Source: Asterias rubens (lineage: Eukaryota). Taken from it: a stretch of DNA of 64,000 bases. Positions 41,904 through 45,641 of this stretch are shown here, in pieces. The stretch covers positions 5,394,001 through 5,458,000 of the forward strand of contig NC_047071.1 in assembly GCF_902459465.1 (NCBI RefSeq), given 5' to 3'. A program made the position numbers and the translations under genes. Below the pieces are notes generated by a model. That model did not search any database, was not told the origin of the DNA, and was given only the letters and a program-made list of their open reading frames with translations. Positions within the stretch are counted from its first letter, which is position 1. The number at the start of each line of letters is the position of its first letter.

Positions 41904-42185
41904 AACATAAAGTAGTTCGTCCCAGTAACAAAAGGACGTAAGCAACAAAATGGCTCCTGACATGAAAAATATGTAATTTTTGTTTGTTCTTTTGCTAGAA
42001 TTACCCTGAAGACATGTTTCCCCATTCCCCATGCAGAATTCATTCTAGAATGACTTTTGCATGGCAACAAATTTACCAAACTTTCCCGCTCATAATTCTT
42101 GAAACACAAATTTTAACATAAATTGCTTACGTCCTTCTGCCGGGAACTTTCCCTTACGTCCTTTTGCCGCGGAGCTCTGGAATCG

Positions 42186-42242
42186 CTTTCGTGGGGCTTT
42201 TCCCCCGGTGCTCTTGCGTGCTGTCTGCTTGGTACGAGCCAT
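42186..42242 (-). pseudogene. H3: Histone H3 N-terminal fragment (M + residues 1-18), fused to H3 residues 83-88
   Basis: ATG GCT CGT ACC AAG CAG...CCA CGA AAG = MARTKQTARKSTGGKAPRK, then CGATTCCAGAGCTCCGCGG (RFQSSA) at 42167-42185. Confidence 0.9.
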
Positions 42243-42269
42243 TATCTTCGCTTACTGTTTACGATGTTG

Positions 42270-42573
42270 TGGTGACACCGCTGAGCAACTTGTTCAACTC
42301 TTCATCGTTTCGGATAGCGAGCTGTAGATGACGGGGGTTGATTCTTGATTTCTTGTTGTCTCGAGCAGTATTACCAGTCAGTTCCAGTATTTCTGCCGTG
42401 AGGTACTCCATGACTGCCGCCAAGTAGACAGGGGCGCCAGCACCAACGCGCTGAGCGTAGTTGCCCTTCCTCAAGAAGCGGTGTACTCTACCAACGGGAA
42501 ATTGAAGTCCGGCCCTGGCGGATCGACTCTTTGCCTTGCTTCTGGCCTTACCGCTCTTTCCGCGTCCAGACAT
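42270..42573 (-). pseudogene. H2A: 3'-truncated H2A copy
   Basis: Matches the 39604 gene up to LLSGVT except LTGNTA versus LAGNAA, then joins the H3 5' flank; no stem-loop. Confidence 0.9.
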
Positions 42574-43459
42574 GACTGAATTGATATACTGAGCAAAGAG
42601 ACTGAAAGAACTGCTGGGTGCTTTGAATCTGTGTGAATGACTGCAGAGACTGCCAGTGGTGTACTTATGGCGTTAGGGTGGATCCCCAATGCACCAATCA
42701 GGTTTCTCCTCGCATGGACGCGCCCGGGTTCAGCGGAGCATTCTGGGCGGGGGTGGACCACCAGCGGCGGGCGGGGGCGGCACGCAGTTCGAGGGGAAGG
42801 TAGGGATAATTACTGCGGCGGTCCCCCCACCGTCAACACCCCTCTGAAAACAAGATAAGATTCCGAGAAAAAAAACCTAACCCCAACAACGACAACAACA
42901 ACAACAACAACAAAAACAAAGCAAAAGCAAATATTTACAGAAACTGAAAAACATCATGTTTGTTTGTTTGTTTTTGCGTGCACATGTTTTTGTTGATTTT
43001 TCAAAATAAAACTATTATCAAATTCATAATTTCAAGTTAACTCTGGCGTATAGAGTCGCTGTTGTTGTTGTGTTGTATGTTATTAAAGTAATACGGTGTC
43101 ATGAACAAGGCACTTACTCAATGTACGTCTTTCTTTCTTTCTTCAAGTCCAATCTTGTGAACCCTCACTCGACTCGGTGACACATTTGAGCGTTGTCTTT
43201 TATAACTGACTGTAAAAGTAGAATAACAATCAACGAGAAAGATGTTTAGTGATCGCTAAAAATTATAGTGGACAAAGTTATCAAGATGATTTGAACTTCG
43301 TAAACAATGTTGTTGAGTTGTTCTACGGAGATATATAAAGAAGGCAGAAATATTTTGAATAACCCTTTAATATAATATAGCATTATTGTAAACCCTGTTG
43401 ATTTTAATTAATATTATTAAATGGGGAGGGTTGGTGTTACGGTGGCCACTTAATTCACG

Positions 43460-43601
43460 GTACTTGGTGACCGCCTTGGTGCCCTCGCTGACAGCGTGTT
43501 TGGCCAGCTCACCGGGGAGAAGGAGACGGACTGCAGTCTGGACCTCTCGGCTGGAGATGGTTGATTTCTTGTTGTAGTGGGCCAATCTAGAAGACTCGGC
43601 G
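43460..43601 (-). pseudogene. H2B: Internal H2B fragment (AESSRL...AVTKY) behind an H2A promoter
   Basis: Matches 40975-41116; C-terminus and stem-loop deleted; joined to the H2A start by a short templated insertion. Confidence 0.85.
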
Positions 43602-44409
43602 ACTAGAAGACTAGAAGACATGACTGAATTGATATACTGAGCAAAGAGACTGAAAGAACTGCTGGGTGCTTTGAATCTGTGTGAATGACTGCAGAGACTG
43701 CCAGTGGTGTACTTATGGCGTTAGGGTGGATCCCCAATGCACCAATCAGGTTTCTCCTCGCATGGACGCGCCCGGGTTCAGCGGAGCATTCTGGGCGGGG
43801 GTGGACCACCAGCGGCGGGCGGGGGCGGCACGCAGTTCGAGGGGAAGGTAGGGATAATTACTGCGGCGGTCCCCCCACCGTCAACACCCCTCTGAAAACA
43901 AGATAAGATTCCGAGAAAAAAAACCTAACCCCAACAACGACAACAACAACAACAACAACAACAAAAACAAAGCAAAAGCAAATATTTACAGAAACTGAAA
44001 AACATCATGTTTGTTTGTTTTTGCGTGCACATGTTTTTGTTGATTTTTCAAAATAAAACTATTACCAAATTCATAATTTCAAGTTAACTCTGGCGTATAG
44101 AGTCGCTGTTGTTGTTGTGTTGTATGTTATTAAAGTAATACGGTGTCATGAACAAGGCACTTACTCAATGTACGCCTTTCTTTCTTTCTTCAAGTCCAAT
44201 CTTGTGAACCCTCACTCGACGACACATTTGAGCGTTGTTTTTTATAACTGACTGTAAAAGTAGAATAACAATCAACGAGAAAGATGTTTAGTGATCGCTA
44301 AAAATTATAGTGGACAAGTTATCAAGATGATTTGAACTTCGTAAACAATGTTGTTGAGTTGTTCTACGGAGATATATAAAGAAGGCAGAAATATTTTGAA
44401 TAACCCTTT

Positions 44410-44697
44410 AAGCAGTTGGCGACCAAAGCTGCCAGAAAGAGTGCCCCGGCCACCGGCGGGGTAAAGAAGCCTCACCGTTACAGACCCGGAACTGTGGCAC
44501 TGCGTGAGATTCGCCGTTACCAGAAAAGTACAGAGCTGCTTATCCGAAAACTTCCCTTCCAGAGACTGGTCCGTGAAATAGCGCAAGACTTCAAGACCGA
44601 ACTGCGATTCCAGAGCTCCGCGGTGATGGCGCTTCAAGAAGCAAGCGAGGCATACCTTGTGGGACTCTTCGAAGACACCAATCTCTGCGCCATCCAC
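44410..44697 (+). pseudogene. H3: Histone H3 central fragment (K18-H113), opposite orientation
   Basis: [27 protein letters not shown]...EDTNLCAIH; flanked by H2A-H2B spacer on the left and an H2B promoter copy on the right. Confidence 0.95.
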
Positions 44698-45566
44698 TGA
44701 TGACTGGTACACCGGAGAAGGCTTAGCTTTATACTGCGAGTCGGGGATCCGGCGGCCATTAGGGCATTGTTAGCATTCGCGCGCCTCGCTGTGAGCAGTG
44801 AAGCGGTCCACCAGAAAAGTTGCGTGTCTGCAAGGATGGGTGTCTGAATAATGGGCAGGCAACCATTGGAAAGGAGTTTTATACTCTGGTTAGAACTAAA
44901 ACACGAATATAGTGTAACCCAAAACAAGTATCCAAAAATAATAATGAGAGAAACTTATCAAAAAAAACAAAAACAAAATCTGCAATGGCCCGAGCATGCA
45001 TAGTACGTTAATTTTGAAGAAAACGATACCATTAAATTATGGAGTAAAACCAAAGCAAGAGATTGACCTAACCAACCCGACTAGACTGATAGAACGACCG
45101 ACCCAATAAAAGAATGGCGGTGCTGCGTAAAGATAAAAAACAACTGTTTTGTTACAGCTAGCAGGTTTTGGGGTATTGTTTTTTTCGTTCATGCTGTTTT
45201 GAATTTAACTTCTGACTGCCATCGTAGCGGGCGCTATACAACATTCGTATAAGTAGGCACGGTCCTCTATTATACCGAAAGTTATGTTTACACTGCAAGG
45301 TGTATACATTAGTTTGTCAAATTTCTAAGGTTCTTGTTTGTTTGTTGCTTGTTTGTTTATTTATTTATTTGTTTGTTTGTTTGTTTGTTTGTTTGTTTGT
45401 TTGTCTATTGGTTCGTTTATTGGTTTGTTTTTGTTTTGTTGAAGGATGGAGTGTGGAAGAGGAAAAATTGGAAGAAATAACGAATACACGGACGTGATTA
45501 ACATCTCTGTTAAGAAGTGGTGGCTCTGAAAAGAGCCGTTGTGTTTTGAGAAAGGAACGAATCCTC

Positions 45567-45641
45567 TCAGGCTCGTTCGCCACGAATTCGGCGGGCGAGT
45601 TGGATGTCCTTGGGCATGATGGTGACCCGCTTGGCGTGGAT
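45567..45641 (-). pseudogene. H3: Histone H3 C-terminal fragment (I112-A135, stop) with canonical stem-loop at 45522-45537
   Basis: IHAKRVTIMPKDIQLARRIRGERA*; joined through GATAC to the H1-array spacer. Confidence 0.9.

Follow-up and report, generated by a model that had tools for sequence, protein, structure and literature searches.

A histone H3 gene in three tiling pieces beside an H1 array of Asterias rubens: probable repair debris of a tandem core-histone repeat

Clustered complex rearrangements produced by microhomology-mediated repair are known in several forms, among them the "chromoanasynthesis" ascribed to microhomology-mediated break-induced replication (MMBIR) or fork stalling and template switching (FoSTeS), end joining by polymerase theta, and chromothripsis-like shattering. 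Sea urchins supplied the first description of histone orphons, which are single or fragmentary elements that originate in tandem histone repeats (Childs et al. 1981, cited in PMC3225859), and sea stars carry repeats of a core-histone quartet with a single transcriptional polarity (Cool et al. 1988, cited in PMC13525598). Here we describe a locus in the sea star Asterias rubens. Its nearest known counterparts are histone orphons and small-scale complex rearrangements, kinds of which it is a new example. In a window of 64,000 nucleotides (assembly GCF_902459465.1, contig NC_047071.1, here C11, positions 5,394,001 to 5,458,000 of the forward strand, the whole stretch analyzed; coordinates without a contig prefix are those of the window), a complete coding sequence for histone H3 is present as three scrambled pieces within a 4.1-kb mosaic (41546-45641), made of ten fragments of a histone repeat unit together with a truncated miniature inverted-repeat transposable element (MITE) and a 14-nt filler, and lying beside an H1 array. 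We hold it probable, at roughly 0.7, that the H3 pieces are non-functional repair debris of one copy of an ordinary replication-dependent H3 gene, derived from a 5,438-bp tandem repeat.

A sequence-only reading of this stretch had proposed that three pieces tile the H3 gene with nothing missing, and translation bears this out in every coordinate, strand and residue. The N-piece (42186-42242, minus strand) encodes M1-K18, the middle piece (44410-44697, plus strand) encodes K18-H113 and then runs into a stop codon, and the C-piece (45567-45641, minus strand) extends from I112 to the stop, with the histone 3' stem-loop (45497-45542, minus strand) on the same unbroken segment, as had also been claimed. 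Adjoining pieces end in the same nucleotides, AAG at the first pair of ends and ATCCAC at the second, and when these overlaps are removed the joined pieces yield a 411-nt frame specifying a perfect 136-residue H3. The frame of the N-piece continues into RFQSSA, the R83-A88 snippet (42167-42186) correctly noted as fused to it, which is identical to H3 at 20 of 20 nucleotides. Along with M1-K18 the N-piece retains 32 nt of its native 5' leader, without a promoter, and none of the three pieces combines a promoter with the full frame. Once junction microhomology is subtracted, the unambiguous overlap amounts to 0-4 nt at K18 and 1-6 nt at I112/H113; two of the three AAG nucleotides, and up to five of the six in ATCCAC, are also accounted for by microhomology to the sequences that these ends now adjoin. 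Judged from these ends, the H3 pieces behave like the reciprocal ends of two breaks.

The same gene also exists in contiguous form. Source contigs, found by looking up the intact H2B protein of the window among ENA and JGI metagenome contigs, carry a canonical tandem unit with intact H4, H3, H2B and H2A genes in several samples. This unit is a 5,438-bp tandem repeat of the order U2 small nuclear RNA (snRNA)-H4-H3-H2B-H2A, its histone genes all of one polarity, and each copy holds a full U2 snRNA gene, placed after H2A and ahead of the H4 that follows (Rfam, 175 bits; L027:3561-3754 and 8999-9192). Spacers of the window are 98-99.3% identical to those of the metagenome contigs, versus 90-93% for the sister species, which argues that the contigs derive from the same species. 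The joined pieces match contiguous H3 at 411 of 411 positions in six of these contigs and are one base off in four others; given this complete identity, the H3 pieces contain no private single-nucleotide polymorphisms (SNPs). A contiguous H3 is likewise found, at 98% identity, in the chromosome of the sister species, where at least 21 tandem units are present. On the chromosome of the mosaic itself, a partial distal unit (C11:5480589-5483649, about 26 kb past the end of the window) holds H2A, H2B, spacer and H3 residues 74-136. In it one strand carries the H2B spacer, the 3' end of H3 and H3 residues 74-113 without interruption; because this unit runs unbroken across ATCCAC, the C-piece and middle piece were formerly joined there. 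Hence the claim that the gene exists only as three pieces stands for this H3 sequence type within the assembly and fails for the species; the apparent uniqueness of the scrambled form arises because the assembly lacks the canonical array. Three intact H3 genes with stem-loops also occur on other chromosomes, encoding the identical protein at 83-84% nucleotide identity, with all differences synonymous. Separately, an H3.3-like gene (C7:5972948-5973325, with S31, A87, I89 and G90) has a canonical histone stem-loop at its 3' end rather than a polyadenylation-type end.

The tiling bears a superficial resemblance to the pointer-joined scrambled genes of ciliates, in that H3 segments are shuffled and reoriented and short repeats are shared at consecutive ends. 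By this analogy, programmed or RNA-level reassembly would join the segments at the pointer-like AAG and ATCCAC in somatic DNA or RNA, a proposal whose sole support is the near-exact tiling with short direct overlaps. Set against it are the identical contiguous gene in tandem arrays of several samples and the contiguous H3 in the sister species' chromosome, along with the lack of any private SNP in the pieces. In addition, most of the overlap sequence is junction microhomology; the N-piece, to which 20 surplus nucleotides duplicating part of the middle piece are fused, has kept just 32 nt of leader; and the three pieces are divided between the two strands. Moreover, the scrambling within the mosaic extends in like fashion to H2A, H2B and spacer DNA. 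The locus thus departs from ciliate scrambled genes in that its contiguous, identical counterpart is ordinary chromosomal DNA, its overlaps are accounted for by the junctions, it contains a surplus segment, and non-genic DNA shares the same fate. Since the species' tandem array holds a contiguous identical H3, reassembly is unnecessary, and ordinary genes account for any H3 mRNA. Separate germline and somatic genomes are not known in echinoderms. Reassembly, which the sequence-only reading had raised and itself thought unlikely, is practically excluded.

Fragments were mapped on the distal partial unit together with the canonical metagenome contigs, and the unit-derived ones match the 5,438-bp canonical unit at 97.5-100% identity. 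The map is as follows, beginning with the adjoining Unit A and its two intact genes.

38670..41545, minus strand: Unit A, collinear with the canonical unit and 98-99.3% identical to units of ENA contigs; contains a U2 snRNA stub (nt 29-1), H2A, H2B and the first 175 nt of the H2B-H3 spacer
39604-39981, minus strand: intact H2A open reading frame (ORF) in Unit A
40960-41328, minus strand: intact H2B ORF in Unit A
41546..41741, minus strand: last H2A codons and H2A 3' flank (canonical ~2100-2297), a 99% copy of 39435-39632
41738..41858, strand not given: 121-nt fragment of the H2B-H3 spacer (canonical 4544-4664), ending at the MITE insertion site
41859..42166, strand not given: MITE copy, left terminal inverted repeat intact, last 11 nt absent (from a five-copy alignment)
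42167..42186, minus strand: 20-nt H3 snippet, R83-A88, 20/20 identical to the H3 of the distal unit
42185..42274, minus strand: H3 N-piece, M1-K18 plus the 32-nt leader, 90/90 identical to the canonical unit
42270..43459, minus strand: truncated H2A, termed H2A' (codons 1 to about 104), still attached to its upstream region with the promoter and to the H2A-H2B spacer; the left junction shows 5 nt of microhomology
43460..43601, minus strand: internal H2B fragment, residues ~72-118, 142/142 identical to 40975-41116
43602..43615, strand not given: 14-nt filler without a match in the canonical unit, copying a 10-nt motif just upstream
43616..44411, minus strand: second copy of the first two H2A codons, H2A upstream region and H2A-H2B spacer (canonical 2655-3461)
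44410..44697, plus strand: H3 middle piece, K18-H113, 288/288 identical, in reverse orientation, to canonical H3
44696..45641, minus strand: H2B 5' flank, H2B-H3 spacer, H3 stem-loop and H3 C-piece, collinear with the canonical unit
45636..46000, strand not given: beginning of the spacer of the H1 tandem array, which adjoins the H3 C-piece

Only the inverted H3 middle piece departs from the order of successive units, with which all other fragments are collinear; this piece occupies the site of an H2B gene, canonical 3462-4041 being missing. The stretch 45154-45181, considered as a possible spacer insertion, was rejected as such on finding that it matches the canonical unit. The intact proteins of Unit A are common in the database (H2A on 82 contigs, H2B on 155). 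The H2A' frame (42262-42573, minus strand, 104 residues) keeps its upstream region and runs out in the H3 leader. It carries two private nonsynonymous changes, both alanine to threonine, and its product is an NCBI-annotated protein on record solely from the reference's own contig. Transcription of H2A' may run on into the N-piece of H3 and the MITE. On the evidence of the map, the mosaic H3, the truncated H2A' and the internal H2B fragment are all incomplete gene copies, of the kind seen in array-derived pseudogene remnants. Private substitutions in the mosaic number about 5 in 3.6 kb (about 0.14%), the two nonsynonymous ones in truncated H2A included, and by this measure the mosaic appears young.

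Twelve junctions lie within 41545-45641, all of them out of register between repeat copies. At the readable junctions, microhomology measures 0, 2, 3, 2, 5, 0 (with a 1-nt insertion), 2, 2 and 3 nt. The 14-nt filler duplicates a 10-nt motif located 6 nt upstream. The 20-nt R83-A88 snippet corresponds to the interior of the H3 middle piece, bounded by microhomologies of 3 and 2 nt, and may be read as a templated filler copied from that interior. Where the C-piece meets the H1 spacer, 3 nt of exact microhomology are found (6 nt with one mismatch). It had been argued that the order and orientation of the pieces could not result from one inversion, and the argument extends further: an origin by one or even two simple inversions was rejected, as the present order would need re-used breakpoints.

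These features are what would be expected had a few units been broken or mis-copied at a dozen sites at the border of the core-histone and H1 arrays, and rejoined by a repair process that uses microhomology and makes fillers, whether end joining of the polymerase-theta type or serial template switching (MMBIR). The 288-bp core of H3 would have been freed by breaks at K18 and I112/H113 and reinserted, inverted, at a former H2B site. The N-terminal stub would have been left on its 32-nt leader and tied to the truncated MITE through a 20-nt filler copied from the freed core, while the C-terminal stub with its stem-loop would have stayed on its own spacer, subsequently joined to H1 spacer. H3 protein would continue to be supplied by letter-identical copies in the canonical array and by the three other H3 genes. 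The earlier suggestion of debris from multi-step template switching is therefore upheld as to rearrangement debris, given the ten fragments, microhomology and fillers; as to template switching in particular it is not, the data failing to separate replicative switching from multi-break end joining.

Whether the breaks around the H3 core were connected bears on a slower alternative, the birth-and-death decay of units at an array edge that escaped homogenization and would over a long time have acquired separate deletions, an inserted MITE and a single small inversion, the H3 tiling being coincidental. Array edges are known to contain degenerate units, and the distal edge unit holds more private substitutions. 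The sister species' array, moreover, includes irregular deletion units with internal jumps (L044:9482; L052:4057 and 18470; unit positions 4805|2257 and 402|3076), from which it follows that rearranged units occur naturally inside such arrays. However, slow decay must accept two complementary breakpoint coincidences around one fragment. When fragments of the observed lengths were placed randomly on the unit in simulation, one abutted at both ends arose in about 0.1% of trials, and this chance of ~0.001 argues that the H3 breakpoints are mechanistically linked. Further, the 411/411 identity of H3 and the private substitution level of ~0.14% indicate a structure too young for seven or more independent deletions. 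We regard gradual decay as an unlikely source of the mosaic; its reciprocal breakpoints speak for linked repair debris and, with its near-zero divergence, would be indirect signs of a single event.

The status of the mosaic as chromosomal DNA of the sequenced animal requires separate consideration, in view of the condition of the reference. No copy of canonical H4 or of the H3-H4 spacer is present among the 150 contigs (417.6 Mb) of the assembly; the best hit, on another chromosome, is 94% over an H4 coding region. The main core-histone array is missing from, or collapsed in, the reference assembly, although the canonical unit is abundant in environmental runs. The distal partial unit, about 40 kb beyond the mosaic and on the far side of a 500-N gap, has a flank orthologous to that of the sister species' array (L043:1-7354), and it probably marks the real upstream border of the array, of which collapse has left 0.57 unit. 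An artefact could then be envisaged in which the 5.4-kb tandem array exceeded the length of the reads and was collapsed or left out, the mosaic being a false consensus or the path of chimeric reads. In keeping with this, H4 and the H3-H4 spacer are absent from all contigs despite the frequency of the unit in environmental runs, the 500-N gap stands at the far end of the H1 array, no junction was found in any other data set searched, and the fragments are nearly identical to canonical units.

Several of these observations weigh against interpreting the pieces as repair debris, and others do so as well. The assembly demonstrably mishandles the core-histone array, and every junction is unique within it, with one occurrence. 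The slight divergence of the fragments from canonical units fits a very recent private event and also fits an artefact. The junction-rich segment 43430-43645 reached a plateau at 13 of 19 sampled words (0.68) in 20 runs from 17 studies, a value equal to that of the canonical words alone. Junction-spanning ORFs were absent among 15 billion proteins (five were looked up exactly), and exact scans of JGI metagenomes for two junction patterns gave no match. For a 144-residue ORF crossing the junction of the C-piece with H1 spacer, a homologue search returned just the ordinary H1-spacer ORF, matching the first 42 residues. The environmental runs have low coverage of Asterias rubens and assemble only multi-copy DNA, so that their silence on single-copy junctions is weak evidence.

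The internal features of the mosaic run counter to the artefact. Collapse of an array joins units in register, whereas here 12 junctions are out of register and delimit fragments of 14-300 nt, with microhomology and locally templated fillers. A genuine junction between MITE end and flank bears private variants, and H2A' has private nonsynonymous changes of its own. From these characters, and the 14-20-nt fragments in particular, the structure looks biological. An origin in misassembly is accordingly judged improbable, and repair debris residing in germline DNA of the sequenced animal would be the better account.

A variant of the repair scenario addresses one further difficulty, namely that the N-piece and the other two pieces lie in apparently successive units; a same-copy origin then needs either a one-unit circular intermediate or identical H3 breaks in neighboring units. 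The retained block begins exactly at K18 in one H3 and ends exactly at H113 in the one that follows. Circular forms of a 5-kb histone cluster, which might reintegrate as orphons, have been discussed (PMC3225859). Part of the array may have undergone a recent private collapse, in which a segment running from H113 to H113, possibly a one-unit extrachromosomal circle, was broken at about four sites and re-integrated beside the H1 array. Such reintegration would explain the survival of all three H3 parts with reciprocal ends, and four breaks in a segment or circle of one unit would be the cheapest account of all the coincidences; as a specific history we nonetheless think it has a small chance of being right.

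The surroundings of the mosaic are themselves rich in repeats. An H1-only tandem array begins at 45636, and its far end is marked by the 500-N gap. In the first H1 copy next to the junction (46023-46706, minus strand) the stop is lost and the frame reads on to 228 residues; this exact product is not on record elsewhere. Additional H1-array spacers were observed at C11:5372300-5391325, just left of the window, and at C4:2334777-2343282, the former implying that the gene-bearing start of the window has H1 arrays on both sides. An H1 homologue search did not find the H1 locus of the sister species, and metagenome contigs retrieved with H1 proteins were too short to reach any array edge.

The MITE belongs to a young family whose members measure ~323 bp and have a terminal inverted repeat of 21 nt. 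At least 40 copies, dispersed through the genome, are 98% identical to the window copy, and four of five copies examined show a 4-bp target duplication. Relative to five aligned family members, the window MITE (308 nt) has two private substitutions and a 4-nt deletion. On the opposite side of Unit A, only nt 1-29 of U2 are kept (38670-38698), adjoining a Tx1-like long interspersed nuclear element (LINE), and since the stub abuts it, the LINE sits in the U2 gene of a histone unit. The same U2 site is taken by two different LINE copies in ENA contigs L024 and L029. The reverse-transcriptase region of the LINE contains a nested DNA transposon (32475-35827; 3,353 bp) whose terminal inverted repeats measure at least 528 bp and whose insertion produced an 8-bp target duplication. 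Its site is empty in ENA contig L029, and its terminal repeat has at least 40 genomic copies, often as inverted pairs 3-4.5 kb apart. A break in the LINE at 35828 had been considered as a cut made by rearrangement, and was rejected, the element having been split by this nested transposon with its target duplication.

Overall, the mosaic shares with histone orphons its incomplete genes and its fragments 97.5-100% identical to the tandem unit. In the assembly, which lacks the main array, it lies between a LINE and the H1 array, a placement that may resemble that of orphons outside the regular array. It differs from them in that at least ten fragments, drawn from a few units, are shuffled along with fillers and a MITE, and all three parts of one gene are kept. 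Like the quartet repeats described in sea stars, the source unit carries H4, H3, H2B and H2A on one strand, without H1, in a tandem repeat of ~5.4 kb; the unit here also bears a full U2 snRNA gene. Clustered junctions, microhomology of 0-5 nt, fillers templated nearby, a local duplication, one inverted segment and reciprocal breakpoints recall rearrangements attributed to MMBIR, FoSTeS or polymerase theta. The mosaic is unlike these in its tiny extent (4 kb) and its tandem-array substrate, in which origin from successive units and from the same unit are indistinguishable, and a single event is something we infer.

These findings advise caution, in that a "gene in three tiling pieces" is here probably repair debris of an ordinary repeat, neither a scrambled gene nor a sign of missing H3. 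They also provide a practical flag for users of the reference, which is without its main U2-H4-H3-H2B-H2A array, the structure of whose unit is now available from independent contigs. If confirmed by reads, the small and well-resolved set of junctions would constitute a natural example of complex repair in a tandem gene array; and should the H113-to-H113 segment or circle prove correct, the locus would represent a natural germline case of circle-mediated, or chromoanasynthesis-like, remodelling of a histone array.

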